Shown one piece after another: positions 7,250 to 36,747 of a stretch of DNA of 64,000 bases (positions are counted from its first letter, which is position 1; each line of letters begins with the position of its first letter). The DNA is from Dimorphilus gyrociliatus (taxonomy: Eukaryota; Animalia; Annelida), in NCBI GenBank assembly GCA_904063045.1, contig CAJFCJ010000006.1:1-64000 (forward strand), in the 5' to 3' direction. The translations under genes and the position numbers were made by a program. The notes under the pieces are model-generated. The model was not told the DNA's origin, did no database searches, and saw nothing but the letters and a program-made list of their open reading frames with translations.

Positions 7250-7422
7250 TTGATATTCAGCTTTTTTTGCTAATTTAAGAGATATTTTGATAATGAACAA
7301 AGGATTATTAATAAACTCATTTTAATGATTGATATAATATAATGAAAAAAAATATATTGCAAAAATCAGTGAATGAACTTTATACTGTACTTAGTACTCT
7401 GTCCTCATTTCGCGTTAGTAGC

Positions 7423-9678: not shown

Positions 9679-9934
9679 TTTAAATCGCGGTTAGCCGACT
9701 AAAATTTGTTTTTTGAATACCTATTGGGTTACTACAACCAATGAGAAACGGTTTTGTAAATATTGTTAGCATGGTTGGTATTCCATTCAAAATTTTCGAT
9801 ATGAGGTATGTAAACAGCCTAATATCCAGGCTGTGCGAAGAACTTGTTTGAACAAGAAAGTATAACTTGTTTGTCTTAAATTTGACAAAGTATTAGTAAA
9901 TCTGTTTCGGTCAAGACCTTATAGAATAAACATC
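9679..9934. promoter_or_regulatory. 256-bp bidirectional promoter between survivin and POC1
   Basis: Divergent ATGs at 9678 (-) and 9935 (+). CCAAT boxes at 9723-9727 (ATTGG) and 9738-9742; TTTGAA (CHR-type) at 9712-9717 and 9847-9852. Confidence 0.65.
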
Positions 9935-12900: not shown

Positions 12901-13402
12901 ACGCCCACTTTCATCTTCCAATGCAGATGATCTTATGAAAGGAGACGGGATTAGGACTACTGTGACAGATGTTCACGTTCCAACAACAGTAAAGATTATT
13001 AAATAATCTGATCTCTATATTCTAATATCAAGTTTATTTTTAGTTAAGAAACGGAGACAGAGAAGATTCCGCAGTGTATCCTTTAACCTCGGATGTCTCT
13101 GATGTTCAAGAGACAGTAGAAGACGGTTTAGAAAGAACGAATTCTTCAAACGCTCCTGGTCGAACAATTCAAGTTCCAGCTGAAATTAGTTCAACATTGG
13201 AGCACATGGTTAAACAAATGGAAATTTTAACAGACGTAAGTTGTATTTTAATTTTGACTTCTTTGCCTATAAACAGCACTTTCTATGATTCGTTTAGACT
13301 GTATCCATCCTTGAACGAAGAATGACTATTGTTGAAGACAAGCTAAAGGAGTGTGGCACAAATCAAGAGAATATTATGATGCAGATGTACTCAAAACAAT
13401 AA
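9935..13402 (+). CDS. POC1: POC1 centriolar WD40 protein
   Basis: MTSM|[30 protein letters not shown]40 repeats, and C-terminal POC1 coiled-coil [13 protein letters not shown]|[19 protein letters not shown]. One abnormally long intron (~10752-12264). Confidence 0.96.
10866..11980 (-). CDS. Uncharacterised spliced gene nested antisense in the long POC1 intron (5' end unresolved)
   Basis: Exons 11430-11361 (70 nt), 11272-11080 (193 nt), 11006-10986 (21 nt) and 10930-10866 join in frame via 88-, 73- and 55-nt GT-AG introns: [23 protein letters not shown]|[11 protein letters not shown]...[24 protein letters not shown]|YNQLTAQ|[27 protein letters not shown] lies ~35 nt downstream. A phase-compatible open exon 11980-11788 is a candidate upstream exon. 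Confidence 0.68.
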
Positions 13403-13639: not shown

Positions 13640-16600
13640 ATGTATGTTGGTTTGTGCATATACTTAGGAATTGTTTCACTTTTAAGTTTAGTTCATGGAA
13701 ATTGCTCTCATTGCAAATATGGTACCTGTGTTAACGCTAAATGTTCTTGTTATGGATTCGTTTATGGATGGAGATGTGATCAAGGTAACATTATTACCTT
13801 CAAGAACGTAAAACTTATTTGTTTTTACATGAATAGTGAAGGGGTACCTTGTCTTGGAAGGTTACGAATATGTACAGTATGACAAGACTTTAAAAGACAA
13901 AACTTTAAGCGAATGCTTAGAATACTGCGAAATTGAACATTTCGCAGGAGTGATATTTACAACGACTGAATGTCATTTTATAAATAGAATTACACTAGAA
14001 GATGTGACAGAGACATATCCAAGTTCTAACAACTTATTACTTATCTATTTAAGTCAGTATTTCGATAGTAAAAGTATACCTCTAAATTTTCTTCTGTTTT
14101 AGATCATCCTAAAGTTTTTCATCCATCCCAATCATCTACATTAAGTATACAATACTTATATGCGTCCATCGGTTGTGATCAAAGATATTATAGCAATCTA
14201 CACATCGACGAATCTCTATGGCTTAGCAAAAACGAAATGAAAATAAAAAATGATTTAATAGATATTGCTGTAGAGAAAACTTTTCTTTGCCCAATGGCTG
14301 CCTTAGGAAGTACGACTAATCTTGCTCAGTATAAAAGTACAACGTCAGGAGAATTTTATAATTTTGATCATTCTTATCGAGCCGTAGATGGTGTCACATT
14401 AACATTAAAAGTACAGGAAATAGAGCATTAATTTTTAATTATTAAAATTTTGAAATATTTTTTAGATTTATAATGGCTGTACTACCATTCTAGAAAGTCC
14501 ATTTTTTGTTCAGGTTGACCTAAGCATAGAAGTACGAGTTCAAAGAGTTGAAATTATTGAAGGAGAATGCTGTTATATTGCGCAACCAAAAGTATTCGTG
14601 AAAGATATTTTATGTTCGGATTCAGCCGTTATAGGTGATAAGAAAACAACTACGATATATAATTGTAATAAAGAGTCGAAAGGAAATTTGCTTAAAATTG
14701 AAAATAATTCGGCTTTTTCAGTGTGTGAAATGCTCGTTTTTTCAGGTAATTAAAATAAATTAATATTAATAAGATTAATGCCTATAAAAAATATTTTTGT
14801 TAAAAAAAAAGAAAACATAGCATTGTACAAGCCTGCTTATGCATATCTTATACCTCTTGATGACTATTTGACAATTGCTTCGGTTTTAAACGATGGAAAA
14901 ATCTCAACATGTTTGTCAAGTAGACCTGTTGAAAATGGTCCCAGATTTCATATTGACTTACAAGATAGCTACCTGATTCATACGATAACTGTTTACCCAA
15001 GCGGCACCGGAAGTAATATTATAATATTTTGTATTAATATAATAACCTTTAATTTTGCATACAATATTTACAATTGAAAGGTGCCAATTCTTCAATTAAT
15101 GCTTATACTTCTTTCGATAATCCAATGTATGATTGGGTGAATATGAATAAAACGTTATGCGCTGATGAACTGTTTCAACTTCAAAAGAAAGAACCAATCA
15201 TATTTACGTGTAAAACTATAGGAAGATTTCTATCTATTATTCTAATATCGCCTAGAGATAAATTGACGTTTTGCGAAATTGAAATGAAGGGTATTTTAAT
15301 ATCTAAACGTAAGTTTTATTATGGGATCGATCAAGGTTCAAATTAAATAGTCTTTTTCCTAGTGCCGAAGAATATTGCTTTAAATCGACCATCTCTTCAA
15401 TACGAAGGCACTTACAGCGATTCTCGTTATGCATCTAGTACAGCTTTTGATGGAGCATTAGGCGGCAACTATATAACAATTAGTCACACATCTGGTAGAA
15501 AAGGACTCCATTGGTTAGCGGTAGCGTTAATTCATACATATACCGTTTCTAGTATAGGCATTCAATACAGGATTTGCTGTAAATTTTTAAATAAAGTCCA
15601 TACTTTAGCATACTAAAAAACTTTTCTTTCGATAGGTGTTGAGAGGAATGGCGAAGATATTGTAGTCGCTGAAGAGTATGAGGATAAGACTTGGGTAGAA
15701 AATGAGCCTACCTGTATAAATTCTACGGCACCATCTTTTGAAAATATTAAACCCTTGGAATACAGACTTCATCCTTGTAAAGTTCCCAATCCTGTGGGAA
15801 AGTTTGTGAAATTACTGAATATGAAAGGGAAAGCTTTTCAGGTAGGGGAGGTTGAAGTTTTTGGCAACCTCCGAAACTTGGCGCCGTATCTTATTGAAAT
15901 AGAAAATATGACGTTAGTTAGTACCAGCATGTCTAATGAGCAAAAAAAATTTATGAATCTTATAAAAGTCTTTGATGGGAACTCTCAAGTTGCAGTTAAA
16001 AACTCTTATGCTCATCCTTGTACTGTAATTTCAAGATACCAAGATGAAGAATTATGGATAGGAGTGGAATTTTCTGTAGTATATTATCTTTTAGAAGTAA
16101 CAGTGGTTCCAACGTTTTTTGATAATAATAGTTTGTTACTTTAATCTTGATTAAATTATTCTTATAAATTAAATTCATTTATCTAGACTTTTTAAACCAT
16201 TTCGATATATCTTTGACGTCATCTCTCCCTACGATTACTTGGCCTCTTTCTCCTCGGACTATATGTAAATACGTAAAGTCAACGATAAAAGGTTCTTGGA
16301 CATGGTTCAATAAATGCCCTCCAAACAGATTCGGCAAGTTTGCCATAATAACCGATAAGAATTCATATTCAAAAAAGATGGGTATTTGTGAGCTGTTACT
16401 TTATGGTTTTCCGCTAAATAACACCGAATTTGGTCGAAAAAGAATATATCAGAAGCATTTTTATCAATATAAAACCTTTACTTCAGAGTTAAAAGCATAT
16501 TCAAAAGTACTTTTATCCAATGAAATTCAAAATTATCCAACACACGAAGTTTTAATATTTGATACAATGAAAAAAATTATATTAAGAAGTCTTTTGATTT

Positions 16601-17116
16601 ATTTTTCTATGGACAAAAAGTCGACTGTTTCCTTTACCATATACTCGAGTTGGAATTATATCAATAGAGATAATTTAATATTTTGCGATGAGCATACTAA
16701 CGCTGGAGTTATTTCTGCCGGGTCAAAAATAGAATACCATTGCAGGAATCTAAAAAAAAATAGATATATATCTTTACACAATACTGGTTATTTCTATATT
16801 AACTATATTGAATTCTTTGTTGACGAATGTAAGTTATAATGAGCTATTATATGTTATTTTAATTGTTCAATTTTCAACAGTTTCACTAGAACGAATTTCA
16901 CTCTCCTCTTCAGCTGTTAACGAGCTTTTTACAAAATGGATTGATTTAAATTTAACAGAATGCCTGCAAAAATGTTTCAGATTATACCATTGCCATTCAG
17001 TATCATTTCAAAAGGTTAACAAGTTATGTTCCATATTGGAGAATGTAATACCAACATCGGACAATAATACAATCGATAATACCTATACAACATTTTCTTA
17101 TAGACAATTTAGATAA
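13640..17116 (+). CDS. Secreted EGF-PAN-F5/8(fucolectin-like) multidomain protein, array copy 1
   Basis: Signal peptide, EGF (CSHCKYGTCVNAKCSCYGFVYGWRC), PAN-like (SECLEYC...ECHF), IQYLYASIGC module, domains opening NLAQYK / NIALYK / NIALNR, VFDGN...HPC, C-terminal PAN (ECLQKCFRLYHCHSVSFQKVNKLC). Confidence 0.8.
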
Positions 17117-17421
17117 ATAATTTTAATTATATAATATTTTGTACAACGTGACAGTGACAAAAAGCTTAATACAAATACTCTAAAATTGTTCAAGTTGAGT
17201 AAATAAAAAAACAAAAATCTATGTTTTTTAATAATAAAATACTAAATAATATATGAGTTTGTCTTTAATTTTAATGAGTACGTATGACAAACAATTGGAT
17301 AATATAAGATATGACTTATGCAGGTATAAGGAAACTAAATTATGAAAAGACAAAGGCATTTGTTTTGACATTTCATTGCTTTCATACTCAAGTTTTATTT
17401 GGATTTTGTGCCCTGTTAGAG

Positions 17422-20400
17422 ATGAAATTCTGTATCGCTTGTTTATGGATTTATACAATTTCACTCTTATGTTTAGTTTACTATGTAACCAGTTCTTGTG
17501 AAACTGAATGCCTTGCAGGTACATGTCAATTTGATAATTGCATATGCTTATCCGGTTTCTATGGGAAATGGTGTGAAAAATGTAAATATTTTCAATACTT
17601 GATATATACAGTATATTGTTTATTATTACAAAATTTTAATTAGCAAATACCATGGTTTTGTTACCTCAATTCGATTCAGAATACAATGATATAGAAATGG
17701 AAGAAAATATGTCATTATTACAATGCATTGAGTCTTGCAGTTTAAAGAACATTTCGTCCTGCACGTATGTAATATCTAACAAAAGTTGCTACTACAAAAG
17801 CAGATGGACACTCGATCCAGATGGAGCTCACATGGCGAAATTAACTTCAAATCCAAATCTTTTCGGCATGTACAGAATATGTAAGACACTTCTTTTTTAA
17901 AATGATATGTTATCTTTTATTGTTGCATTTTCTAGTTGATGCAGCAGTTACCTGTTCAAATAAAGATGTGAAGAGGGTTAACGGCAATCATTGTATTGAG
18001 CTTCTATTTCGACGAGCAGGTTGTTTGCCAGAAAAATTTGCTGAACTTTTAAAAGCAAAAGGAACGAATTGGCTAGGAAAGACTGTAGAATATGTTAAAC
18101 AAGAATTAAAGAATATAATGAATAGTGATGAACGAAATTTTTGTCGCCATGAGTCTTTCCATGGAAGAAAGAATCTTGCTTATAGGGCACTGACTTCTGG
18201 TGATACGATCACTTCAGATATAAACCATCCTTCTCATATCGTTGACGGAGTTAAAGAAACCAATTTCGTCGGTATTTTCTTGTGTTTTAGACTAATAGCA
18301 ATAAAAATAACTGTTTGTTTCCCAATTGAAATAATCAGACGGGTGGTTGTAGTGAAGTAACTGGTTCGCCTACTTGGTTAAATATCACCTTGGATCATCA
18401 TTTATCTCTGTATAGTGTTGAAATTTTATCGGCTGATTGCTGTAAGCTACCATTCGTTAAAATTTATGGAGACAATAGTAAATACTGTTCGGACTCCTAT
18501 AATGTTGAAACGATTATAGGAAAAACAACATTCATTTGTTTATCAGAGGTTATAACTAATAAAGTGATTATAATAGGTGAAGGAAATATGGTTGTTTGTG
18601 AGGTTAGCATTTTCTCAGGTAGGCTTTATTTTCAAAGCACAATACCATATACTGTATAAGTATTCGTAACTTACTTTTGTTTATTCTAAATAGATAATAT
18701 TGCCGAAGGTAAAGGTGTCATTCTTAACAGCTATAGGTCTGATACTGTAATAGATGAATTTGATCCCATCTATTTGACTGATGGTATTCCGACTAGCTGT
18801 ATGAAGCTACAAAATCCCTATAGCTTTTTCATTGATCTTGGAGATATTTTTACTATACAACAGGTTAAAATTATGAAATCATCCTTAACTACTGGTTAGT
18901 AAACAATTAATGAATTCTGTAGGTTTGTTTAACATTCCATATTTTAGGTGCAGTGCAGGCGAATGTAGTTGGCTATGCTCACCATCTAGCATTTACTCAG
19001 GTCGTGAATATATGTTCTTCGCTTGTCGACGTTGTTTTTGTAAATAATTGGGCAAATTTTAGTTGCCAGTCAAATAACAATGTTAGATTTATTCATGTAA
19101 AAACAAATAGCAACAACAACCTACTTTTATGTGATTTGATTATAAAGGGAAGTTTTTCCGAAAAAGGTAAAATCATGTAATTATCTTATCTTTTTTATCA
19201 TGAAAATTTTATCCATGTTTACAGGAAGCACCAACATAGCTTTTAATAAAATTTGTTGGAATTCAGGATCTTATCGACGAACTAATAATCTGAACTTTAT
19301 TCCCTCTAAATTAGTTGATGGTATTATCGGAGGAACCGCTCCGTATCTTTATCAATCTGCTAGCCCAGAAGCCTGGTTATGCGTTGATCTATATAATATC
19401 TTTAAAGTGCAATCTTTTATTTTGATTAGTCCTATTCGTAAGTATTTATCAATTAATATTAAGATGAACTTATTAATTATGTTTGGCGAAAAGGAGAAAG
19501 AGGCGATTCATTTCACGTTACTGTTATCAACGAAGTTCCAGATGAAGATTGGAATTTAACAAATACAAATTGTCTCAGAGATTACCGACCTTACGAAGAC
19601 AGATCATTAGGAAGTTTAAAAATTGCCAATTGCACAAATCCTTATCCTATTGGAAGATATTTTATAATAGTTGAAGTATTAAATAGTTCATTAGTAGCAA
19701 GTGAACTGGAAATTTACGGTATACTTGAAAAAGAAATAGCCGATTTGTTGTCATTAAATAATATAAGCAGTATTCACCAAAGAAGTAAAAGAGGATTAGA
19801 TTTTAATCATCCAATTAAAATGTTTGACGAAAATGCTAATTCGATATTTGAAAATGAATATTTTCAGTCATGTGCTACTATTGTTAAAAGTGACAGGGAC
19901 TATCTTAACTGGATGGGTGTTGATTTTCAAACATATATGTTAGTCAGCAAAGTTATTTTAGTACCAGCTAATGATCCGCATCAAGGTTTTATTCATCTTC
20001 TTTGTTGTAATATACATTTATTTATATCTATTTTTCGTATTTATAGAACGATTTAACCATTTTCAAATAGTGATGTTAGGTCAAAGTATTGCAAATGATA
20101 ATTACAAAAGGAGCCAATCCGGCTACTTTTTGTGTCGCTATATTAATCTGGATAGACCGTTGGGTTGGATATGGAATATAGACTGCAAAAACTACACCCA
20201 CGGACAAGTTCTTATAATAATTGACAAAAGAATAAATACGTTTAGAATGTCAATATGTGAATTGAAAATATATGCTGTACAAATAGCCAAACCTGAAGAA
20301 GGACAGTCAAAGAGCTATGATAAACATATTTTCAGATATCCCTCTCTTGTCGCAAATGATAAGGCTAAATATTTTAAGACGATTTATAGTTTCGAATCAC

Positions 20401-21013
20401 CATATATCTTTTCATATACTTCACTTACTGTTGATACAGTTAGACTCTTTGAGCTGAATCTAATAAGGATATTTACATCATTTAATTACAACTCTAAATC
20501 TTCCTTTAAGATATACAATAGTCGAGATTTGCATAATACAAATGAGTTAGAATACTGCAATGAACATAGATTGGAAGACGATGGTGAAATTTTAAGAGAA
20601 TCTGTAGTTAAATATTGGTGTAAACACAAGTCGATTGGTAGATATGTAGTGTTTGAAATTAATAGCGCCCTGAACTTTAGAGTTATAGAGTTACGTGGCT
20701 CAGAGTGTGAGAATCCAATTTTCAATATAATATTATTGAATAACGAATGCTACTAATACATTTGTTTACAGATGCCTTTCGTAAAAAGTCACCTCAAGAT
20801 GAATCTGTTCTACAGCAATTTCAAAATTGGCTTCCATCAATATCATTTCAAAGATGTATCTCCTCCTGTTGGAGGGACATAAATTGTTCATCTTATGCTT
20901 ACAAATGGAATAACGCTCAATGCTCTCATTCACCCGAAAGATTTATTTCTTCAAACACTCAACAATGGGAAAGTTCAGATATAACTTTCTATAAGTTAGT
21001 CAGAACGCCTTAA
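17422..21013 (+). CDS. Array copy 2 (signal peptide-EGF-PAN-module-F5/8 repeats-PAN)
   Basis: MKFCIACLWIYTISLLCLV, EGF CETECLAGTCQFDNCICLSGFYGKWC, CIELLFRRAGC, NLAYR / NIAEGK / NIAFNK, HPIKMFDEN...QSC, terminal PAN RCISSCWRDINCSSYAY. Confidence 0.8.
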
Positions 21014-21526
21014 CTGTCCATTTTAAATATGGCAATTGAATGAAAATGATCCAATAAATTCCTGGGAGTTATACTTTAAGTCGTCGATAAGTTAACAATA
21101 AATTGGATAATAACTATTCTCAAATTTCTCAAATGAATAAGATGTAATTGCATCATTTTCTCAATTTACTTTGAAGGATTGATTATTTACAATTCAACCT
21201 ATTTTTGATAACAAAGACAACTATCGAATTTGTTTATGGAAATTTTGCAATATCTCAATTTTTTATATAAAAGACTTGAACAATAATAATATAGATGTGA
21301 CGTTTCTTTGAATATTAATGAATAGCAATAAACTTATTGTTACTTGATTACAATACCTAATGAATAGAATGCAAATAGTTAATTTAACAGTTTAGTCCAA
21401 TAGCAGCTCTAATTTATCATTATTTTATATTTTTTTGTAAAGAATATCTATAAACAGTTCATTAAATATTTGCAGTTAACGAATAATTTATGAGTTCATT
21501 TGGCAGCCAAGACGAAAAACTTAACA

Positions 21527-24500
21527 ATGAAGAAACTAGATTTGCTTCACCTTATATTAGTAGTTTTTCAAATTGTACAAACAATTTCAATTTGCCCGCT
21601 TGGAAGAGTTTCTGATATTAATAGATGTGAAGAGTATTATGACATTGAAGACAATACGTCTAAAGGTATCGAAGTGACTTAAAAATAGAATAAGATTACA
21701 ATTTAATGTTTTTTTCAGATATGTTTGTTTTTCTAAGCGGATACGACGCTTATGGAAATGATTTATATAATTTGAAACTTACCTTTGATGTTTGTTTACA
21801 AATATGCTTTGATGAACCGGATTGTTTTTTAATAACAAGAAGTAAACGGAATGAAATTTGCTATCTGAAACGAAAAATATATTTATCTCTTCAAAGTGAA
21901 GACACACAACCACAAAATACCTTTATAAGAAAGTGTGGCAGTTGTGAAACGGCCTATTTAATTGGTAATGAACAATACAGAATAACCTGATATCTAATAA
22001 GCAATTCATTATACGCAGATCGAGAAGAAGGCATATTATGCTCACACGAAGAAAATGCTAAAATTACAGGGAAACTCTGTGCCCAATATTTATATTTAAA
22101 AGCGGGAGGTTTATATAATAACTTTGAATTAGTTTATAAAATGATTGGAGATCTTTGGACTGACAAACCTCTAAAACAAATTCAAGATAATATCGACAAA
22201 AGTACTATCTGGAATCCAATCATAAATAGAGAGAATATCGCGTTATATCGTAAAGTTAAAGTTAATAATACTGCAGTGGACAATTATATTCCCTATCACG
22301 CAGTTGATGGTGTTAATTATCCAATAGTAGTAAGTTTCGTTAAGATAAGAGCTATTCATTTTTAATTAGCTCTCTATATTTTCATTTGTAATTTCATAGA
22401 ATCTTCAGGCTTGTGCCATATTTACAAATATTGACAATTCTGCGCCAGCTTATATAGAAGTTAACTTAGAATCAGTGATCAAACTTTATTGTTTAATAAT
22501 ATCAGAATCTAACAATAAGCAATTATCGGAAATTGTAATCTACAAACAATATACAACGGAAAAGCAGATTATTTGTAATGAAACTAAAAGAAAGGTAAAC
22601 TTAGATACAACATTCTACTGCAAAAATAACGATTCTGCTAAAATATTAAATTTGGAATATTTTAATAAATTAGAAATCTGCGAAATTAAAATATATCCAG
22701 GTAAAACTTGTCAAATAACTAGTTTACAGCTATTTCCCTTCTATTTTTTCTTTACAGACAATTTGGCATTAGGAAAGCCAGTTTTAAATTCTGCAAATTT
22801 CATGACAAACAATCAGTTTATTGAAGATAATCTTTTTAGATTAATTTTTATCGATCTAGAACAAGAATATTCTGTAAACTTCGTAGCTTTAAATTATACT
22901 AATCCACATGAAAAAAGTATAATAACAAGTTTATTTATCAATAAAAACGTATTCTATTTTAATGAAAATTAATAGATAATGTTACTTTCCAAATTCAATA
23001 CATTAAAAGTTTCTTACAACTGGACAATGAAGATTTAAAATTACATTCATACTCGAAAAACAATAGTATCAATTTTATTCGGAGGAAAGTTACTCAAAGA
23101 GCAAGATATTTAAATATCTATAGATTAAATGAGGACTTTTACGAAATAACATTTATACAAATTTATGGACAGCTGAAAAGTAAGTAATTTAAACTTTTAG
23201 TTAAAGTTAATTGTTAGATTTTGATTATCTCTTGTTACAGAACCAAATTTTCTTAATATTGCTTATAGAAAGCATATCTCTCTGTTGAATAGTTCGGATT
23301 ATGTTTTTAAATTAAATGACGGTAATTTCAATTCCTATAGTGAAATATCAGCAGATTCAATGATTGGGATTTATCTTGGTAAAATCTATGCAATTCAATC
23401 ATTCGCTTTACTCTATGGATTAAGTGTGTGTTCATCTATTATTATCTATCTCATTTTTCTTTTATATATGTATTTTTACTATTCAGATAATGAAACTGTT
23501 CAGTATTATTTATCCGCTTTCGTTAACAACACTATCGAGAGTCAAGATATCGATGAAAATATGCAATCTTGCATTGATAATAATGAACTAAATCTTCCTT
23601 TGAAATATCAATATTTTCACTTTCAATGTGATAATATTGTAAAAGGAAATCGTTTTATAGTATTAAATAAAAATTCTAGGATAATTATCAATGAAATTCA
23701 AATTTTTGGTCTAGAATTCAATGATGGGAATATAATACCAATTGAAGAAATTAAACAATTTCATACAAGTGACAGTGGGCCTATAGACGATTATCATTTC
23801 CATCATCCAATAAAGGCCTTCGACGGCTATCATGAGAACATAATTTCCGATTTAAGTAGGCATTCGTGTACCTTTTTTTATACAAAATTTAACTATGCCT
23901 GGTTAGCTATTGAGCTTTTCAATGAAATTTTATTAGAACAAATAGTAATTACCTACGGAAAATATGCAAATGAAGGTATTGTATGTTGTTTATACCAATA
24001 TAAAATGTTTTTTATTACTTTTTACCATAAAAGAAGTCTTAAGTGAATTTGACGTTTCTGTTGTACGAGAAAACGTTTCATTAACCAATTGGCCTTTTGT
24101 AACACGTCGAATCTGTAATTATAGAAATATTAAGAAACATNNNNNNNNNNNNNNNNNNNNNNNNNNNNNNNNNNNNNNNNNNNNNNNNNNNNNNNNNNNN
24201 NNNNNNNNNNNNNNNNNNNNNNNNNNNNNNNNNNNNNNNNNNNNNNNNNNNNNNNNNNNNNNNNNNNNNNNNNNNNNNNNNNNNNNNNNNNNNNNNNNNN
24301 NNNNNNNNNNNNNNNNNNNNNNNNNNNNNNNNNNNNNNNNNNNNNNNNNNNNNNNNNNNNNNNNNNNNNNNNNNNNNNNNNNNNNNNNNNNNNNNNNNNN
24401 NNNNNNNNNNNNNNNNNNNNNNNNNNNNNNNNNNNNNNNNNNNNNNNNNNNNNNNNNNNNNNNNNNNNNNNNNNNNNNNNNNNNNNNNNNNNNNNNNNNN

Positions 24501-25009
24501 NNNNNNNTAATAATTTTGAATTATATTCCGTTGAAAATGTTTTTATTGCATCGTCATTAAAGGTTTTTTGCGATGATTATAAAACGCAAGATGGTAATAT
24601 AACATCAAAATCTATACTTCGTTTTTATTGTAAAAGAACAATTATAGCAAAATATTTTGTATTAGAAAATTTAAATGGGATATTAAATATTAATCGTATT
24701 GTGTTCTATGGATGGAGTTGTAAGTTATGGATGAAAACATCGCTTAAAAACGAAATAGTAATATCTTTCTCTTTTATTATAGATTCGTTTAGAATAACTA
24801 CTACAAATGATATGTCTACTTTAGCAAGTTTTACGACCATCGAAGCGAAATCTTTTAGCATTTGTTGCAAAAGCTGCTTAATTTCTGTTAATTGCAAATC
24901 ATTTCTATATGAATGGAAAGATAAGATATGTTCAATTAGTGATAAAATCTTTGCGAAAAACTTTGAGAGCACAATCACCACGACAAACTATCACATGTTT
25001 TCAATATAA
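21527..25009 (+). CDS. Array copy 3 (interrupted by assembly gap)
   Basis: MKKLDLLHLILVVFQIVQTISIC, PAN VCLQICFDEPDC, CAQYLYLKAGG, NIALYRKV, NLALGKP, HPIKAFDGY...HSC, terminal PAN ICCKSCLISVNCKSFLY. Confidence 0.75.
24141..24507. other. Assembly gap (367 N) inside coding sequence of array copy 3
   Basis: Run of N. The homologous stretch in copy 4 (between ENIKH and GNF) is 315 nt versus 368 nt here, so the gap either hides a ~53-nt intron or its length is an estimate. Confidence 0.95.
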
Positions 25010-25628
25010 TATTTAAATACCCTTACAAACAATACATTTGAAAGCTAATGTAGTTTCGTAATTGATAAATGTTTGTACTAGGTAAATATCTAATAATAGT
25101 CTTTCTGCTATTAACTCTTATAAAATAGAATATTTATGAATAAGAAAAAATATGATAATATGCTATTATACAATACTTTGTTAACTGCTGTACCTTTTGA
25201 AATATAAAGACTAATTCTTTACTCTAATTGGTGTTTGTCATATCTTATATTCGAAGATTATTTTGCTTAGAATGGCATTAAATTCAAAGCAATCCTTGGG
25301 GGGGGGGGAGAGCAGAAGGGTAGTGTTTAGTTGCAATTCAAATAGTTCAATGATATTTAATAAGGCAATTACCAAGAAATCTATCTTTACCATCATTTTT
25401 ATTTCTTTGAATATTTAATAGCACTATTATTTTATTGCATATGTTTCAAAAAGATGTTTATTCAGTCAACTGTAAATGGAGTCACTACCTTAAATGATCA
25501 ATCTTGAATGAGAAGAAACAATTTCTATGGATAAACTTTAATTATTATTCTAAATTATTAAAGATATCTTTACTATACGATTTTCATTCTTGAAGTTTGT
25601 CCGTATAACTTTCAATATTTTGGTGGAA

Positions 25629-28600
25629 ATGTATTGTATTTATATTTTCATTTTTTGCTTTTCTATCAAAAATTTGAATGGAGCTTGCGATTATTTGAAC
25701 GCTTTTGATGATTCTGAATCTTGTATTATATATAATTATACGTCTACATCTGTTCAAGGTATTTAGATAAATATATCCAGAGATATCGTTTCTATATTGG
25801 ATCGGTTTTAATAAAATTTATCAAAGTTAAAGGCGTTGTGGCGATTAAGAAGTACATTTCACCAGGAAATAACCTTTTTCCTTCGTGTAAACTCATAGAA
25901 AATTTAAATGAAGCGATTGTATATTGTCAATCACATCAGAATTGCGTTGGATTTGTTTTTTCTATTCCACAGAGCTGTGTATTGTATAAATCCACAATTC
26001 ATTTAAACTATAGGCCAGGTTTCAGTTTCAAATATCTCGGCGACCAACCTAATTCAGCTCTATTTTACTTTCTAGGTTTGAAAAATGACTTTCTAATTTC
26101 ATTTAATAGAAATATATCTTTTCCTTTTAGATACGCAAGATATAAGATGTAATGCTATTGGGAATTCAGGTGATATTGTAGAGGATAAATATTGTTTTCA
26201 ATATCTTTTTTTAAAATCTGGTTGTTTACTGGACAATTTTGATATTACATACAAAAAGTACACAACATACTGGACAAATCAACCTTTTTCATTAATAAAA
26301 AACAGCTTTAATTCATTTTTAAATTCCTGTTTAGCTCATTTTTGTAATAGTAAATCATATCCCGTTAATGGCGGTTATAATTTGGCTTTATATAGATCAG
26401 TGAAGTCAAGCGGATACAATTCATCCGAATTTCATCCATATCACGCGGTTGATGGAGTTATTTACAGCATACTGGCAAGTAAAAATCCGTAAACTACAAC
26501 TTGTAACTATATTTCTATTGTGAGAAATATGCTAAAATCAAATAAATATACAAGAGTTTACAAAGATTCTATCAGCATCAAGTAAACAAATATTTGAAGG
26601 ATGCTTTTTAGAAACCTTTTAACACTAGAATTAGATCAACCGTTTTCCCGACAAGATAAAGATTCTTTCTAGAGGCGTTGCTTATATCTTCTATGATATA
26701 TAATTAATACTTTATTCTATTTATTAATCAATTGAACATTCAAAATGCAGTTATCTTCCTCCATTATGTTTCTCTTTTCTTCACCTTATTAAATTTAGAT
26801 TGTATCTTTGTTTTATCATTTTCCATTATAGCCTTTAATAATTCTTCTCTCTCAACAGCATACTGGCGGATGTACTATAGTTTTAGGTGACGAACTCCTG
26901 CAATATTACTTTGAAGTTAATCTAGATACTCCAACGATGATTGAAAATCTTGTTGTTTTTGAACATGAATTTTATGGAAATTCAAGTGATTATCGTGCAT
27001 ATATTGAATCAATTTCCTCAGAGAAGAAACCAATGTATAGTCTCGAATTGAATGAGAAAGCGAAAAGATATTTCTATATCATTGATATAGAAATGTCTGG
27101 AAAAGTTTATATCAATAGTACAAGTACATTTTCAATTTGTGAAATAAGAATTTATTCTGGTAAGGTTTATACAAAAGAAATTGTGTCAATTAGTCAAATA
27201 TATGTAAATATAAACAAATATATTCAGCTGATATTTCATTTGGAAAATCTCAATTCAATTTTACTAACACATCAACAAGTTTAAATACAAATCAGCCATC
27301 TTGGATTATTCTTGGAGACTTTTTAGCAACAATTTTAATTGATTTGGAAGGGATGTTTATTATTAATCTTATTGAATTAAACATTGAATATAGCAGTTTT
27401 GGTAAATTTTTGTCATTTACAATATAATAATTATACAAATATAATATTAAAATCTTTCAGTTAACGCTATTTTGGATGAAAACTATAGAGCCAGTATTTT
27501 TAAAGAAATCAATTCAATACAGTTAAATACCGGAGATACGTACAGTTGTAATAAGCGAAATGATTCAAATTTCATTTTAAATTGTGTCGGAATCTCTAAA
27601 GGAAAATATGTTCTATTCAAAGAGAGAAGAGATATTAATCATCCAATTGAAAATATTATAATTAGAGGTAGATTTTTATACAAAAAAGGTAAAATTTTAT
27701 TATTTTAATTTATTTAATTAGTTATTTAATTGAATTTATTTAATTATTAATGCAGACAAGAATATTGCTAAACATAAATCAATACGACAAACTTTTGATA
27801 ATCGATATTCAAGCAGAATTGCTGATGGATTGTTTAAAACGTTTTTAATATTTAAAAGAAAGAGCCAATTTTTTATTCACTTAGGAGCTTTATATAACGT
27901 TACCTCTTTTGCTATTTTTTTTCAAAGTAATCAAATACATTATCGATCTTTTTAGTTAAAAAGTTTATAATTTGTCTGTCTTTTTATTGAAAATTTGCTG
28001 TTAGGCGATAAGAATATTACTATAACTGCTTGGGCTAAATTTCAAACTAAAGATGGCAGTATAAATTCTTCAAACTGTGTTGAAAATTATGAGATCGGTG
28101 GAGATTTTATACATCAATTCCAACAAATTTATTGCCTTGGTTCCAACACAATTGGTCGATCATTTATAATAAGAAACAAATCTCCATTTGAGTTTAGTAT
28201 CAATGAAGTTCAAATTTTTGGTTCATTTCAACAATTACAATCCAAATTAATTTACTTAAATGAGATTAAAGCATTTTATTCAAGTAATAGTACTTCTGAA
28301 CAAATTCGCTATCAGAATGTACTTAAAGCATTTGATGGTAATCATAGTAGTTTAGTTACGGACTATCAACATCATTCTTGTATGTTTCTATTGAAAAGTG
28401 ATACTTTTTCATGGTTTATCATTCAACTTTACGATCCGTATCACTTATTATCTCTTAAAATAACACCTGGTGAATATATGAATAAAGGTAACATCAATAA
28501 GATATGAATGAAATTTTGAATAAAAATCGCTATTTCAATAGAAATTATAAACAATTTTGACGTATCAACATCATACCAACTGTCTTCTTTAATAGATTGG

Positions 28601-29498
28601 TCTCCTTACAAACCACGTCGTATTTGTAGATATTTACATAGAGAAAATATTAAACATGGATGGTTTTGGTTCCTTAAGTGTAAAAATAATTCATTTGGCA
28701 ACACAGTCGCCATTACCACCAGACACTCTGATATGAATATAATAGTAATATGCGAGATTGCACTATTTGGAGTAAAAACTAACTTGGACTTTGGAAAGAA
28801 AATGATCTTTAAGAAGCATTTCTTTATGGAAAATTACAATAAATTACAAGTATATTTCAAAGAAAGAATTCAACTGAGCGTCGATTATCCTAAAGTATTA
28901 ATAGTAGACACTGGTAAAAGGGTAAATATTAAGAAAGTAGACATACACTTCTCGAAACAAGGCTCTCCCTCTGGAAATTTTAAATTGTATATTGTTGATA
29001 ATTTTCTTAACTGTTCAGAAGAAGATTATAATGTATGCGATAATCACGATATACTGAAAGATGGACCGATATTGAATAACTCAGTAATTCAATACTTTTG
29101 TAAAAATGACATAGTAATGGGACGTTATTTTATTTTAAAAGGAGAGAATACAATAGAAATAGATGATATTAATTTTTTTGGAGAGATTTGTAAGTGTTGA
29201 ATAATAATAAATCATTTTATATAAATCAATAATGAGTTGTTTTATTCTATCTATAAAAGATTCATTTAAGCGGCTACTTGAAAAGAATTCAACAGCTTCA
29301 TTGAACCAAAAACCATTCGAAGAAATTTTTCAAGCAATCTTTTCAAACTGTAGTCAATTATGCTTTAAAAACAATAAATGTAAATCGTATATATTCAACG
29401 TAATAACGAGAAAATGTTCTCTTTACAAAGAAATTCTGGAATATATTAACCTTCATCTGAACAATTCAATAATGGGATTTTCCCTATTCAAATTATGA
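25629..29498 (+). CDS. Array copy 4
   Basis: MYCIYIFIFCFSIKNLNGAC, PAN YCQSHQNCVGFVF, CFQYLFLKSGC, NLALYRSV...HAVDG, GC-AG intron 26475-26858, NVLKAFDGN...HSC, FGKKMIFKKHF, terminal PAN NCSQLCFKNNKCKSY. Confidence 0.8.
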
Positions 29499-29984
29499 TA
29501 AAAAACCAATTCGATAATGGTATGCCCTACTTTTGAAACTCTGACAATCATTTTGATTAAAACAAATCTAGATTATTCGTTAAAAAGGATACAAGATAGA
29601 AAAGATCAAGAGTCTTTTTTTTTGAAGATGCTTGTCTTTACGAGACAATTTATGAATTAATAAGATAATTGCTAACACATTTGGTCAAGAACTGTTACTA
29701 CTTTATTTTATCGCACATTTTGTATTTTTATTGTTCTATTGTTTTAATTATAAAAGATTTCATTGGACAGTATTTTCAATACAATACGAAAGAAGAACTA
29801 AATTATTCATATCTTATATATGAGTCAACTAGTTTATAGTATAATATCGATATTCAGTGTATTGCTTTAGGAAATTACTATCTCAGATATTGAAGTTTAT
29901 TCCATGAACAAACATTAGTTATATATACCATATTTTTCATATGATATTCACTATTCTTTCAAGCAGATTCACGTTTGTGTTAAA

Positions 29985-32900
29985 ATGAAATTTGCTCATA
30001 TTTTCCTCAAGTTTAAATCAACATTTTCAATTAATGTTTTTATAATTTTTTTATCATCTTTATCCAACTCTAACAGTTTGTTTTCACTAAATCAAGTGAA
30101 AAAAGATCCTGTATATTGTTCTTCTGTACTCTATGATACTTATGGTTAATAAACTTTAACTTTACGACAAAAATTCTTTTTCTCTTACTTCCGATTTTTT
30201 GCTTTTAGACGCAGTTGTCCTTTCATATGTAGATTTCACTGGCGAAACCTTTTTTTCAATGAAATATGACAGTTTTAACGATTGTATTGAAAATTGTTTA
30301 AGTAAATCTAAGTGCAGTGGTGCTACATTTTGGGATGATAAATGCTACTTTTATAAGAAGGTTAATTTAAATGAGAATTCTGGTCTAAAGAGAACAGGCT
30401 ATGCATATTCTTTCTATATTAGAAGTAAGTTTAAAAGTCTATATTACTTTTATAAAACTATCTAATATATAGCTCGAAAGATAAAGTGCGAGAATCCTGA
30501 ACATGAAAAGATAAAGGGAAAATACTGTGCTCAATATTTCTTTTTAAACCAAGGATGTACTTTTAGTAATTTTGAAAGTGCTTATGAGCAGTATAGCTAT
30601 CATTGGAAAAATAATCCTATTGAAGATATTGAAGCTCATGTTGAAAGTATTAAACAATCGACATTCTGCAAAAAAAGAATAAGTTCTGGAAGAATAAATG
30701 TTGCCCCTTTAGCGAAAATACATTTATCTGGAAATATTACGTCATCTCTACTTCATCCCTATCATATGATTGATGATGTTTTAATAAACAATGAGGCATG
30801 TTTGTAAATAATAAAGTTACTTTATTAATGCTGTTTATCTTATTTAGCATCTTGGGAGTTGCTCTTTTATTCTTAGAAATGATACAATTAATATTATTAC
30901 ACATTATTTATTTATACGTGTACAAAGTGTTACTATTCATGGAGCAAATGGCTATTCTCTCCCTCAAGTGGAAATTGCTTTAATTGACGAAACAGAAACG
31001 CTTATGGAATTAGCGAAAGAGAGTAATAGTCTCATGAAAACATTTTTTAGTCCATCGTTGAATCTAACTAAAATGATCAAAATAAATACGATTAATAACG
31101 ATATAAATGGCTGGATTATATGTGAAATACAGATATATACCTGTAAATTATCAACTTTCTCTAATAATTATAGAAAATAGCGTTGATTGTAATCTCTTTC
31201 AGATGATATTTCATATGGTAAACCTCAAATGAACTTGCAAAACGGCTTACCCAATTCTGCCGCTACTGGTACATGGTTAGAAACAGATGACCAGCTCCTT
31301 TTTAATACTTTAATTGACCTTCAAGCCGACTTTATGATTGAAAATGTACATATAGAATTTAATGGAATATCGAGTAACATTTAATTAACTATTTTTTATT
31401 AAAGATATACATTTAACAATTTATTATCCTTTTTTAAGCATTTTCTTCGGTCTACTATACTAAAGATATTAACGAAATAATGACAAATATCAAAACAAAA
31501 GTAATTTGTCAAAACAAGACAAATATCTTCCATTGTCCAATAGAATCTGAAGCAAGATATATTTTGATTGCAAGTAATACAATGAATCAATCTTCTATTA
31601 AAGATATATATGTGTCTGGGCAATATATTAAAAATTATATAGGTATATTTATTTTGATTAAAAACAAGATACAGTATTTACGAGACGAAGGATTTTTGAT
31701 CATTTTCTATTGAATTACAGTAAATGCTGCTTTAAAAAAGGTGATATATCTTTCTTCAAATAGGACTAGTCCGTATTTTGGAAATGATGGAAATTTCAAC
31801 AGTTATATCACTGTTATTCCTGAACAATATCTTACTGTTCATCTGGTTTATGTCTACGTTATTAGATCATTTTCACTACTTTTCTATAGTAAATAACAAT
31901 ATATTAATAAAAAATACCTTTTTTTCTATAAGAATGTCCTATTTTCTGTTAGATGTTGAATATTCAATTTTGATATCTACTGAAGTTTATGGGTCGGGCA
32001 ATAAACACTTTTGCATTGATGGTGCAGTTTTGGAACAGTCATCAGTTTATCAAATCAAAGAGTTTTTCTGTAAAAATTATATGGAAGGAGAATATTTCGA
32101 CCTAATCTCCTCCAAACAGTTTAGAATTTATGAACTTGAAATTTACGGAAGTAGAAAAGAATCATCTGAAATAATTAAATGGGATTTATTAGATTATTTC
32201 ACTTTAAGCTCACAAACTGATAATGATATAATATATAATAATCCTATAAAGGCTTTTGACGGTAAATATCAGAATGAGTTAAAGGATGATAATTTTAAAT
32301 CTTGTAGTAGAGTACCATTCTCAACTATAAGTAGATATAAATGGTATGCTGTTAGAATGAAAAATATATATTTAATTGAAGGATGCATATTAAATTTTGG
32401 GTCAACTGAAGGTGAGACTATAAGAGAATAAAGATTGTATATTCTCACGATAACCGTGTATGTAATTAATAGGCGTTCCCGATGAATTTGATGTATCAAC
32501 AACAAATGAAACCTTAGATACATTAACATGGCCTTCTGTTAGTCGGACTATATGTAAATATATAAAACCTGAAATGCCATATCAAATCTTTTGGCATATA
32601 ACCTGCTCTACTTTGGCTTATGCTAATTATTTGGTTGTTACCGACAGAGGTTCTTTGCAAACAAACTTAACACTTTGCGAATTGACACCTTTCGGAGCGG
32701 AAAGTAATCCTACAACTGGTAAACTGTTAAAGTATGATAAAATGATTCTAGAATCTTCGAATGGACTTTCTAAATCAATCGATATAAATTTAATTTCAAA
32801 TAGTTTAATAGAATACTCAAATGTTCAAAAGTTAATAATAGATTTGAAAATAACAGCGGTTATTTATTTTGTGACTCTACACTTTTCTCAAAAGACTTTA

Positions 32901-33393
32901 AATAACTCTGAAATAACTTTAGCACACACAAAAAACCGATCTTTTAATTATAGTACTTACGAAAAATATTCACCATCACACTTTGGACCAGTTTTGAATC
33001 AGACTATTTTTCAATTTCATAATGCCAATGAAGAGATATTAAAATACTTTAGTATTACTTTTAATGTTGACCACTATAGAGTAGCTAAAGTAGAACTTCA
33101 TGGAATGAGATGTAAGTACTATTTCTATTCTATTTTTAAATTGTCATAAGTATACATGTTTAAATTTATTTAAAGATGCTTTTAGAAGAACCAAATTCCG
33201 TAATGTAGAATCAAAAGTATTCGTCTTAACTACATCATTCTCAAAATGTTCTAACGAATGTTTAAGAATAGAAAATTGTAATACATTTGCCTATAATTCT
33301 GTCAAGAGGGAATGCACCTTATCATCTGAATTGTACAGTTATAAAAAACCAAACGAAAATAATCCTATAATGCTGTCATATTTTCCATTGTAA
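29985..33393 (+). CDS. Array copy 5
   Basis: MKFAHIFLKF...VFIIFLSSL, PAN DCIENCLSKSKCSG, CAQYFFLNQGC, NVAPL...HMIDD, GC-AG intron 30796-30847, NPIKAFDGK...KSC, terminal PAN KCSNECLRIENCNTFAYNSVKREC; stop at 33391-33393. Confidence 0.8.
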
Positions 33394-35873
33394 GATTACA
33401 TGTATATACTGAATATAAATTTATATGTTTATACTGTTTATACTGTTTATAACTGTTTGTTAATGATTTATAACAAACAAAATAAAAAGAAAGAAGGTTT
33501 TATCAATAAATATATTTTTTTTATTGAAAAACTACACTGAACATTGAATTGAATTTTAGGAAATTGAACAATTTTCGTTAAAACATTAACATTGACCTTG
33601 TAAAAAATTGATTGAATAATAGTTATTAATATTAATAGTTTAGCATCATATATAATAAATTATCAAAAATTATAGAAAAATGTCAAAATGAAGGAGATAA
33701 TATTATTAAATTTCATTCTTTTTCTTTTTCAATGAGGAAAAAACAATGAGCTATTCACTGATTGTAAACTGGATATTTATAGTGTATAACTTGTCAACAG
33801 CAATTAGAATAAGATATAGATTACCATAACTTCTGATGTAAAGAAACATATCTATGAATGAATCCTTTATTCTGAAATATTCTTCAATTATAAAGATAAA
33901 TATTGAATTTATGAAAGAGAGTGATTATAAAATTTAAATGTATCTAGTACAAAAAAGAACATTGGTTTTATAAATTGGTTAAATCTTTAGATATTGATTA
34001 CGTGTTCATTTTTCTTTGAACAGCTGGAGAGAATATGACACTCTCATTCAAATTATCCGAATAATATCTTTCTAACTACTCCTTCAATTTATATCTTTAA
34101 GCAAAAAGGAGTGTCTTAGAATGTCCTCTTTTTACAACATCCTAATGAATTGGATTTATTCAGGATAAATAATCTTGAAGGGTAAACTCGGAGGAAGCTG
34201 TGGGGAATTTTTAATGTTTATACAGTATTATTAGAATTGAAGAGAAGAAGTTAATAATCAGACTGTAGCAAATTAACTAATAAATTTTGCAGTAGATTTA
34301 TTTCCTCTGCAATAGTATTTTATTTGGTAAATAAAGAATAATTTATTTCGACAGTTAATATAAAACGAATAATATTGAATTGAACGAGAAATTAATACAG
34401 TCAAAGTTTATTCTATAAAGCAAATAGCTTGTTAAGGTAAAATTGAATTCAATTAAACAATATTAGCATATTAGGAAAAGAGGTATAAATCGACTCTCTC
34501 TTAATTTATCGATTGGCGCTGCAAAGAATTTTGCAAATTATCGATAGAACTAGAAAAATTATATAGTATATTAACCCGAATTTAGGCCTATTGTTCCATC
34601 AAGCCTAGATAATAGTATTAAAAGAGTTCTCAGCAACATTTTCTGTCATATTTCTTTCTTGCTATCGATTATTTATGCATAAAATTATCTATGGATACTT
34701 CTTTCGACGATTATTGTTAATATAATAGTCTAGTAGATGAAGAAGTCTCGAAAAATCTGAAATGTAAAGCGCATACTGCAACAACTGGAATATGTAACAA
34801 TGCCATAGAGATACGTCAAATTTCGAGTTTAATTTTATAAGCAATAATCTTATTTTCCTCTCGAATTTTCTTTTCTTCTCTTAACGAATGATAATTCCTT
34901 TCCATTTATTGATAAAAAGAAATGGTTCTAGTGCTTTATTTGCCTCCGGAAATAAGAATCTATATTGTAGAAGGGTCTTTCCTGATTTTGACGGAGGTAG
35001 ATTAACCTGAATTATTTATTTGCGACAAAAATTAAACTATGCATAAGCATTTCAATAAATTTTCATGCAATACCGTAAACTATTCATAATTTATGTAAAT
35101 TATTAAACGTATTTGCATATTATAACAAACAGAATGGTATTTACAACCATTCTTCATCAAAATGAGCTTTTAGTGTATATATAATCTTGAATTATTCCTC
35201 AATACTTTCGATTATGTCCAATAGATGGCTCTAGATTCTTAATTTCTGTATTTTTACTATTAACTTGAGGAATGTAAACATATATATATACCATTTGTAA
35301 TATAAAGAAATATATTGACAATGTAGAAGTATTAGTTTCAAAAAGATATCTAATGATTAAGCTCTTATGATGATGAAGAAACGAAGAGAAGAAATAATTA
35401 CATTAATGTTATAGTAATATGCAATCAAACGTTAAAATTTCTGAGGTAATCATCTGTAAAATTCATAATATTTAATTATTGCCCTTTGATAACACCAAAG
35501 ATAGTCATTAGTTGTAGTAATACGTTTAATGAATCATATTTATGCGGAAAATTTGAAAATAGAAAGAAACGATTGTACTATGAAGAAATTAGGATAGAAA
35601 TTACCATACAGCTTTACGTAAGATTATAAAAACGAGTCTTTTGGGTAAATAAGTCATATAAAATCTTCAAATTAATTACGAACTGTAAGCGTAAGGGACA
35701 ATATGTCTTCCAAGAATTTTAAAATAATTACACACATGTAAATTACGAAGATAAATAGTGTCTAGAAACGTTGTAGCGAGTTATTGTAGTTTCTCTTATT
35801 CTCTTTCTCTCCTTCTCTCCTTCTCTAATAGCATACACGCACACGAATATAGAAAAATTCTCAACTCACACAG

Positions 35874-35924
<51 letters not shown>
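35874..35924. repeat. Compound (CA)n(TA)n microsatellite
   Basis: CACACA... directly followed by TATATA... Confidence 0.9.
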
Positions 35925-35926
<2 letters not shown>

Positions 35927-36747
35927 CCTTTCTCTGTATAGATGCTAGCTTTATTATTCTACAAAAAAAAACCAGATTATATATTTAACTAATACAGATA
36001 ATGAAAGAGAGAAAACATGACAGACTTAACAATCTAGTTCGTCTTGTAAGTTTCTATTTTTATTGTAAAAAAATATAATAATTCTCAACATTCGGTTGTA
36101 ATTGAGGCAATTGATCATTGATCAATCGAAAATACAAGAAAATATTAGGAATAATCCAAAAAAATTGGATTATTTCATTGATCATAAAGGACAACAGTCC
36201 TATAAAGTAGAACTTGAATTACAATAAGACTAAATTCCAATCCAAATTCTTATTCCTCCTACTTTCCTTTCAAATATAATAGAGATAAATTTTTTATTTT
36301 CTATTTAATTGGATCAAGCTTAGGAGAATTAATTATCGGGGCAGAACATTCTAAATCATCATAATTCCTTCTCAGAATTATTTATATATACTGTATAGAG
36401 CATCGAAAAAAAGGGCCAAGGTTCATGTTAATGTCAAATCATCGTATGTAATTATCATAAATACAAGTATTTAGCGTTGTATAAATAAAAGAGCCTTAAA
36501 TTTAACATTTATTTTGAATCACTGCAAACAATCAAAAAAAATTTACAGTACAGAATGCAGAAGTATTGTAATTTTTTTAAGGAATAAAACAGCATAGTTT
36601 AAAACACTATTTAATTTATAAAACTGCTTATACGTACAAAATTAAGAATATCATTATTAAAAGAATATTTCTAAAAGTCAGATAAAAGGTAAAAATCTAT
36701 ATAAAAAAAATGAGAAAAAACAATTGAACACTAGTAGTATATTTTTT

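Follow-up and report, generated by a model that had tools for sequence, protein, structure and literature searches.

F-type lectins are often built as tandem repeats and serve immune recognition or, in oysters, sperm-egg binding (PMC5712786). Their fucose-binding motif is HX24RXDX4(R/K) (PMC5712786). The described examples are secreted and carry 2-7 tandem jelly-roll domains. They include eel AAA, striped bass MsaFBP32, and the Xenopus proteins with multiple F-type lectin domains (FTLD) or with FTLD and pentraxin. Here, we compare them with a locus of the worm Dimorphilus gyrociliatus. The window, meaning the whole stretch of DNA analysed, takes up the initial 64 kb of contig C6 (assembly of 77.9 Mb). 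Its positions 13640-33393 hold an array of five genes, g1 to g5. Their proteins share with tandem F-type lectins the NLA...QSS start, the h2DGx motif, the CEVEVYG strand, and, by alignment in most domains, the Cys columns of two structural disulfides. Unlike these lectins, they do not carry HX24RXDX4(R/K), they have PAN domains flanking the repeats, and a helical module stands before the repeats. PAN is not among the FTLD partner domains in the review PMC5712786. The similarity is so low that single domains of the array miss the Pfam cut-offs.

Two other systems are close to these proteins. Oyster sperm bindin has 1-5 F-lectin repeats in tandem, some of them without the basic triad, and changes very fast (PMC5712786). 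However, bindin diversity comes from few genes through polymorphism, recombination, and splicing, whereas the family described here has about 50 old, fixed paralogues. Bindin also has neither PAN nor the helical module. The discoidin or F5/8 type C proteins (factor V/VIII C domains, lactadherin, neuropilin b1, muskelin, and bacterial CBM32) have the same fold. Conversely, the signatures in the array are of F-type, the match to PF00754 (FA58C) is under the cut-off, and the partner domains are different. F-type-lectin-derived multidomain proteins are known, and the PAN-flanked order and the helical module are new. We have high confidence that the five genes encode multidomain proteins of PAN, module, and F-type-lectin-like domains.

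The preliminary description of this DNA reported five same-strand genes of 3.4-3.9 kb, spaced 305-619 bp apart. Our own splice models agree. The five genes are on the plus strand and span 3409-3870 bp.

13640-17116, plus strand: gene 1 (g1), 10 exons, coding sequence 2979 nt; splice model with frame and phases checked
17422-21013, plus strand: gene 2 (g2), 10 exons, coding sequence 3036 nt; within the fused public model DgyrCDS4151
21527-25009, plus strand: gene 3 (g3), 10 exons, assembly gap in exon 9; second half of DgyrCDS4151
25629-29498, plus strand: gene 4 (g4), 10 exons, coding sequence 2943 nt, intron 3 of about 402 bp at 26457-26858
29985-33393, plus strand: gene 5 (g5), 10 exons, coding sequence 2832 nt; partial public model DgyrCDS4152

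The spacers g1-g2, g2-g3, g3-g4, and g4-g5 measure 305, 513, 619, and 486 bp. The DNA is AT-rich, with a GC content of 22-34% across 13640-33393, and the window contains nothing human-looking. The gene models were made with splice-site matrices from 21 short introns of public models and a dynamic program over GT-AG introns. Doubtful junctions were inspected by hand. Searches and folds were run exon by exon or on public proteins; statements on whole proteins rest on four public spliced models of this subfamily, P0001, P0002, P0008, and P0011. A 16-nt micro-exon in g4 was rejected as an artefact of the splice program, and a single intron of about 402 bp was used instead. A 42-nt intron within g5 exon 8 was discarded for the same reason, as were tiny 5' exons in the genes of a relative's contig (L004, below).

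The exon sizes match from gene to gene. More precisely, exon 2 measures 216/237/246/243/216 nt from g1 to g5, exon 8 measures 495/492/489/483/459 nt, and exon 9 measures 642/660/gap/648/639 nt. The introns are short. Their median is 61.5 bp (36 introns of the four complete genes g1, g2, g4, and g5), and the published median for this species is 66 bp (PMC7854359). Intron 3 of g4 is the outlier; in the other four genes, this intron measures 55-77 bp. The common architecture and the homologous intron positions claimed before are thus found in ten size-matched exons per gene. The absence of long nucleotide identity among the copies also stands: blastn between g1-g5 gave only matches of 20-39 nt and no longer DNA similarity. 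At the protein level, homologous exons are 24-36% identical.

Every exon chain is free of stops, with consistent phases. The off-frame stop frequency within exons is 0.09-0.11. Therefore, the chance of about 1000 open codons is below 1e-40 per gene. The five genes are intact and tandemly duplicated.

The public annotation of the locus is different. Two public proteins map exactly to the window, DgyrCDS4151 and DgyrCDS4152, at 17652-24878 and 30259-33390. DgyrCDS4151 (1557 residues) starts inside g2 exon 2. It bypasses the g2 stop codon by a 512-bp "intron", which fuses g2 with g3, and then jumps across the assembly gap. DgyrCDS4152 covers g5 only in part and leaves out coding exons. For g1 and g4, no public protein appeared among the matches of the exon 9 profile search, which was able to find them. 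These models suit an array of old duplicates that are decaying and no longer expressed: two of five genes are without a public protein, the other models are wrong or partial, and the divergence is extreme. Nevertheless, this explanation is very improbable. The four complete genes keep about 940-1010 codons open with GT-AG introns, each against the chance given above, and their Cys residues and motifs are conserved. The comparison with a relative, given below, points the same way.

The genes encode, in this order, a signal peptide, an EGF-like or degenerate Cys stretch, a PAN (apple) domain, a four-Cys three-helix module, five F-type-lectin-like domains, and a second PAN domain. The products are predicted to be soluble secreted proteins of about 940-1010 residues. 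In every gene, exon 1 encodes a hydrophobic N-terminus, although in g4 and g5 the hydrophobicity is weaker. This N-terminus is the sole strongly hydrophobic stretch, and no segment like a transmembrane helix was seen. This agrees with the earlier statement that the proteins are secreted and without a transmembrane segment. The six-Cys EGF-like pattern of g1 and g2 was read by eye, and Pfam gave no EGF match. In g3-g5, one or two Cys are left of it. The EGF-like signature is C-x-C-x5-G-x2-C.

13640-13784, plus strand: g1 exon 1, signal peptide and six-Cys EGF-like motif CSCYGFVYGWRC; read by eye
17422-17581, plus strand: g2 exon 1, signal peptide and six-Cys EGF-like motif CICLSGFYGKWC; translation
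21527-21665, plus strand: g3 exon 1, signal peptide and Cys remnant; translation
25629-25758, plus strand: g4 exon 1, short hydrophobic N-terminus and Cys remnant; translation
29985-30144, plus strand: g5 exon 1, hydrophobic N-terminus and Cys remnant; translation

The PAN domains are encoded by exons 2 and 10. The C-terminal one is over the Pfam PAN_1 cut-off (21.4) in the five genes. The N-terminal one is over the PAN_3 cut-off (21.1) only in g3 and g5; in g1, g2, and g4 it was assigned by position.

13837-14052, plus strand: g1 exon 2, N-terminal PAN-like; PAN_3 12.8 bits, below the cut-off; assigned by position
17644-17880, plus strand: g2 exon 2, N-terminal PAN-like; no Pfam match; position and Cys pattern
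21719-21964, plus strand: g3 exon 2, N-terminal PAN; PAN_3 21.8 bits against 21.1
25833-26075, plus strand: g4 exon 2, N-terminal PAN-like; no Pfam match; assigned by position
30209-30424, plus strand: g5 exon 2, N-terminal PAN; PAN_3 26.9 bits against 21.1
16881-17116, plus strand: g1 exon 10, C-terminal PAN; PAN_1 25.1 bits
20772-21013, plus strand: g2 exon 10, C-terminal PAN; PAN_1 23.3 bits
24783-25009, plus strand: g3 exon 10, C-terminal PAN; PAN_1 29.2 bits
29260-29498, plus strand: g4 exon 10, C-terminal PAN; PAN_1 28.2 bits
33176-33393, plus strand: g5 exon 10, C-terminal PAN; PAN_1 27.3 bits

In exon 3, a stretch of about 70 residues with four conserved Cys comes first, and lectin-like domain 1 starts after it (alignment A4). 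The AlphaFold2 model of the g2 module shows three helices, with a predicted local distance difference test (pLDDT) of 74-86 for residues 11-70. The module has no Pfam match. With Foldseek, nothing was below an expectation value (E) of 1, and there was no PDB match. An exhaustive structural search (VIA) gave a best Z of 5.0 with generic helical proteins, and the ESM Atlas gave nothing usable. In the outside relatives examined, the module is absent, and only the F-type start of the profile matches there.

14103-14410, plus strand: g1 exon 3, four-Cys helical module and domain 1 start; alignment A4 and profile match
17936-18267, plus strand: g2 exon 3, modelled three-helix four-Cys module and domain 1 start; AlphaFold2
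22019-22329, plus strand: g3 exon 3, module and domain 1 start; alignment and profile match
26131-26456, plus strand: g4 exon 3, module and domain 1 start; alignment, profile match, and junction checked
30473-30803, plus strand: g5 exon 3, module and domain 1 start; alignment and profile match

The lectin-like repeats continue from exon 4 to exon 9. The preliminary description was right about the repeats but counted them as "4 to 5"; every gene has five.

14466-16828, plus strand: g1 exons 4-9, rest of domain 1 and domains 2-5; Pfam F5_F8 hints, AlphaFold2 and Foldseek (exon 9)
18339-20706, plus strand: g2 exons 4-9, domains 1-5; PF22633 on P0001 and alignment to canonical F-type domains
22400-24719, plus strand: g3 exons 4-9, domains 1-5; gap within domains 4/5
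26859-29189, plus strand: g4 exons 4-9, domains 1-5; paralogue comparison and profiles
30877-33111, plus strand: g5 exons 4-9, domains 1-5; paralogue comparison and profiles

An intron splits each repeat, and for this reason single exons score weakly for F5_F8_type_C. On the public spliced model P0001, PF22633 reaches 36.6 bits against a cut-off of 27.8. PF00754 reaches 17.5 bits for g1 exon 7 and 19.9 bits for P0001, both under its cut-off of 28.2. A profile from the second half of domain 1 matches the second halves of the other domains weakly. A hidden Markov model from the seven near-identical repeats of a fish protein (P0012) gave one weak exon match only, this profile being too narrow. 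PDB sequence searches with the exon profiles A2 and A3 gave nothing meaningful. The MAFFT alignments A1 and A5 (half-domain exon rows, wrong-repeat placement) were excluded from profiles and folding.

The exon 9 profile (A2) was more informative. Among 1.84 billion cluster representatives, it matched 34 proteins only, and the tandem FTLD proteins among them gave E values of 1e-33 to 1e-4. Some of the matches are the worm's own proteins and exon-sized Logan fragments from a relative. All the outside matches that we scanned are proteins with multiple F5_F8_type_C domains, from molluscs, a nemertean, a hemichordate, frogs, and a fish. They include the fish P0012 with seven repeats, each with the canonical F-type fucose motif; a frog protein with seven repeats and a pentraxin; and a Lineus cluster containing a "fucolectin-6-like" protein. 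The closest outside relatives are tandem fucolectins.

The fold agrees with this. The AlphaFold2 model of g1 exon 9, which covers domain 5 and half of domain 4, is a beta-sandwich (12-row alignment, pLDDT 79, predicted template modelling score 0.79). In Foldseek, it is closest to PDB structures of the F5/8 type C, discoidin, and CBM32 kinds, with E of 6e-5 to 1e-3 and probability 1.0. These structures include 2kd7 (E 6e-5), muskelin, factor VIII C2, and lactadherin C2.

Over their full length, the five domains of g2 (slices of P0001) can be aligned with canonical F-type domains. Common to both are the NLA start, h2DGx, the equivalents of Cys50/Cys146 and Cys108/Cys124, the W.VDL strand, and the CE.E.YG end. 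The profile matches and this alignment bear out the fucolectin-like character proposed before. The h2DGx cation motif reads IVDGV, LTDGI, and LVDGI in g2 domains 1-3, and it is degenerate in domain 4 (MFDEN) and in domain 5. Among g1 and g3-g5, domain 4 has AFDGN, AFDGY, and AFDGK. Judged from the sequence alignment alone, the Cys50-Cys146 and Cys108-Cys124 columns are present in most domains, and the contiguous pair Cys82-Cys83 is retained only in domain 1 of g1 and g2. The anchor motifs of the preliminary description were recovered and fall on these landmarks. IKVFDGN, IKMFDEN, IKAFDGY, LKAFDGN, and IKAFDGK are each followed by H/Q/K-P/S-C, and W-x5/6-R-x-IC[KRN]Y is present in four copies (g1, g3, g4, and g5). 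In these motifs, [IL]KxFDG is the domain 4 cation motif, [HQK][PS]C is Cys50, and R-x-IC-x-Y is Cys108.

In g3, part of this region is missing from the assembly.

24141-24507, no strand: assembly gap inside g3 exon 9; about 336 nt of coding sequence missing; nominal 367 N

The exon 9 profile (A6) matches g3 at 24045-24134 (profile positions 2-31) and at 24506-24724 (positions 144-216). The two parts are collinear across the gap, so they belong to one exon that misses about 112 residues (about 336 nt). Upstream of the gap, 24140 is the end of the last complete codon; downstream, whole codons resume at 24509. A true gap therefore needs 3k+2 bases, a length that the nominal 367 misses by one; this length is an estimate, so the mismatch of one base in the frame means little. 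Exon 9 ends at 24719, and intron 9 (24720-24782) is itself in frame and stop-free.

A genomic contig of 16,953 bp from a relative (L004, run SRR23372228) is syntenic with the window. We found no paper mentioning this run, DgyrCDS4151, or DgyrCDS4152. In front of the array, both have a BIR gene and a WD40 gene, whose proteins are 91% and 81% identical between the two. The DNA is 72% identical across 4.7 kb, and past window position 13407 it can no longer be aligned. Beyond this position, the relative has three genes of the family, with exons 29-47% identical to g1, g2, and g3/g4. Their structure is kept: exons of 280/204/234/213/489/633/236 nt in L004 correspond to 280/201/228/228/495/642/236 nt in g1. 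The orthologue of g5 is on a second contig of the relative (L012).

We estimated the non-synonymous (dN) and synonymous (dS) divergence between the window and the relative with the Nei-Gojobori method on exon-wise codon alignments. The BIR gene has dN 0.049 and dS 1.59, and the WD40 gene has dN 0.124 and dS 1.70. On the other hand, the g1 pair has dN 0.58 and dS 2.3, and the g2 pair has dN 0.70 and dS 1.6. The dN of the array is 5-14 times that of the flanking genes, and dN is lower than dS throughout. A caution against the reading given here is that dN/dS is only a rough upper-level indication, because dS is saturated. The change in the array genes is fast but constrained. This supports the fast diversification proposed before (dN 0.58-0.70 against 0.05-0.12 in the flanks).

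A maximum-likelihood tree from exon 9 joins g2 and g5 each to its counterpart in the relative, with support of 98/96 and 97/92, and leaves the other pairs unsupported. The duplications behind g2 and g5, at least, are older than the split from this relative, to which dS is saturated. The family is old, as had been claimed. The orthologues are intact as well, with the same exon sizes. From the pairing and the intact orthologues it follows that the duplications are old, that the copies were kept intact, and that decay is practically excluded. That dN is lower than dS also speaks against non-functional duplicates.

The same divergence suits another explanation, reproductive recognition. The genes would encode sperm or egg/cocoon-coat proteins, driven by sexual conflict or species recognition as in oyster sperm bindin. 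In D. gyrociliatus, dwarf males fertilise the females within the cocoon. Orthologues that are 29-47% identical next to neighbours at 81-91% fit such a role, and oyster bindin is known for just this combination, F-type repeats in tandem and very fast divergence (PMC5712786). However, about 50 loci far exceed the one or few genes of bindin-type systems. The paralogues are also ancient and one-to-one between species, not turned over. We consider this explanation unlikely.

The array is part of a wider family. The module profile matched 19 further genomic places beyond the array. A broader module profile (A7) gave 62 matches, which represent about 50 loci; many of these are tandem copies, and haplotype duplicates may be among them. 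Contig C10 holds five in 20 kb, and there are several each time on C5, C36, C69, and C2. The family is also on C87, C58, and further contigs. The loci that we fetched have the same layout of EGF, PAN, module, lectin-like repeats, and PAN, and neighbouring copies are frequent. Compared with the window genes, these arrays have fewer introns, and their motifs are nearer to canonical F-type ones (e.g., CHT...W.QIDL). In the genome, the exon 9 profile matches strongly only the five window genes and a single gene each on C26 and C17. With these two, the window array makes up a strongly diverged branch of seven genes. The preliminary description called the array the best candidate for an undescribed system. 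This is not supported: the genes encode paralogous single proteins, and the family of which they are a branch has about 50 loci in this genome.

Tandem arrays of the wider family are at C10:979597-998470, C5:4443713-4448687, and C2:3471672-3480801. The C5 pair is nearly identical, so its duplication is recent, unlike that of the window array. The C26 paralogue (L003:2667-3851, minus strand) has an open stretch of 395 residues across exons 8 and 9, which probably reflects an in-frame, stop-free intron. Its public model, DgyrCDS13679, removes 759 bp of coding-like sequence. On C69, one member (L007:5161-6453) has a long Ser/Thr-rich, mucin-like stretch between lectin-like domains.

The claim of lineage restriction also stands within the searches made. 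The architecture of PAN and module was found only in the worm and its relative, in one search seeded with exon 9 and in insensitive word searches. The word-indexed protein searches (P0001 1-926, the open reading frame of L007, and P0008 17-266) returned the query only or nothing. They are no evidence of absence because they are too insensitive at 25-35% identity.

The proteins would act extracellularly as multivalent binders, with seven potential binding domains and no anchor. Five variable, loop-bearing barrels would bind diversified glycan or protein targets, probably other than fucose. The PAN ends would add a second surface for binding or self-association. The setting would be humoral or mucus-associated defence, in which the proteins agglutinate or coat microbes or particles. 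In favour of this, the genome paper reports nine expanded families only, mostly immune genes duplicated locally (PMC7854359), and tandem F-type lectins serve immune recognition (PMC5712786). As a whole, this explanation of soluble multivalent binders in a defence or mucus setting has about an even chance of being right. For the defence or mucosal role itself, the chance is even at best. The preliminary description had proposed multivalent recognition, and this can be stated only conditionally, the canonical fucose-binding motif being absent.

Several observations weigh against this explanation and the assignments on which it is built. Individual domains fall under the Pfam cut-offs. A relaxed regular expression for the fucose motif gave 0 matches in P0001, P0002, P0008, and P0011; as a control, the fish P0012 gave 14 overlapping matches, and each of its seven repeats was covered. 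None of the five g2 domains retains His52, nor is the R-x-D-x4-R segment kept. Sugar binding by the lectin-like domains is thus not assured. With the fucose motif lost, the ligands are probably not fucose and perhaps not sugars. Fast divergence suits reproductive proteins as well as immune ones. The lack of a public protein for g1 and g4, with the other models fused or partial, suggests that transcript support for the array genes may be weak. Finally, this family may or may not be among the nine "immune" expansions of the genome paper.

The loss of the fucose motif would also suit a scaffold. In this case, the proteins would be structural components of a secreted matrix (mucus, cocoon jelly, cuticle, or adhesive gland) that cross-link glycoproteins. 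Sea-urchin nectin, with six discoidin domains, and a discoidin-bearing footprint protein of sea stars would be parallels. Multivalency, PAN ends, the lack of a membrane anchor, and the mucin-like stretch of the C69 member fit this role. Nevertheless, matrix proteins usually evolve more slowly and seldom have about 50 diverged paralogues. We consider a matrix role unlikely and prefer soluble binders in defence or mucus.

The sequence around the array shows other features. Directly past g5, 33394-36760 is a stretch of 3.3 kb with 25% GC and no open frame longer than 67 residues. It is about one array unit long, compared with the array spacers of 0.3-0.6 kb. It may be a fully decayed sixth copy; a search for such a copy in this interval found no detectable similarity. 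In the relative, a further PAN-bearing open reading frame lies downstream of the g5 orthologue (L012:6680-6919). The neighbours at 5844-13322 and at 36751-62823 look ordinary. The former are a lipase-like open reading frame, a mitochondrial-carrier-like gene, and the BIR and WD40 genes. Apart from BIR and WD40, which have Pfam labels on the orthologous contig, the neighbours were read by eye.

9143-9442, minus strand: BIR gene; Pfam label on the orthologous contig
10048-13322: WD40 gene; Pfam label on the orthologous contig
36751-43276, minus strand: Ig/FN3 gene; by eye
51092-51877: NSA2-like gene; by eye
58195-58986, minus strand: G-protein-coupled receptor; by eye
62206-62823: aromatic-amino-acid-decarboxylase-like exon; by eye

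These results have consequences at different levels. The annotation of the locus needs correcting: two genes are without a public protein among the matches, two are fused, and one is partial. For lectin biology, the family is a natural case of F-type domains that retain the scaffold and drop the fucose motif. A bolder proposal, which we hold as rather improbable, is that dinophilids have in these approximately 50 genes a germline-encoded repertoire of their own, made up of diversified recognition proteins. The barrels would be retargeted from fucose to many different ligands, and the module would be required for assembly or signalling. If true, this repertoire would be a lophotrochozoan counterpart of families such as the snail FREPs.

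Because the D. gyrociliatus genome has very few expanded families, this one stands out. The family of about 50 genes is one of the few large lineage-specific investments of a streamlined genome. It points to a need for many variants, most likely for the recognition of microbes, mucus components, or mates.

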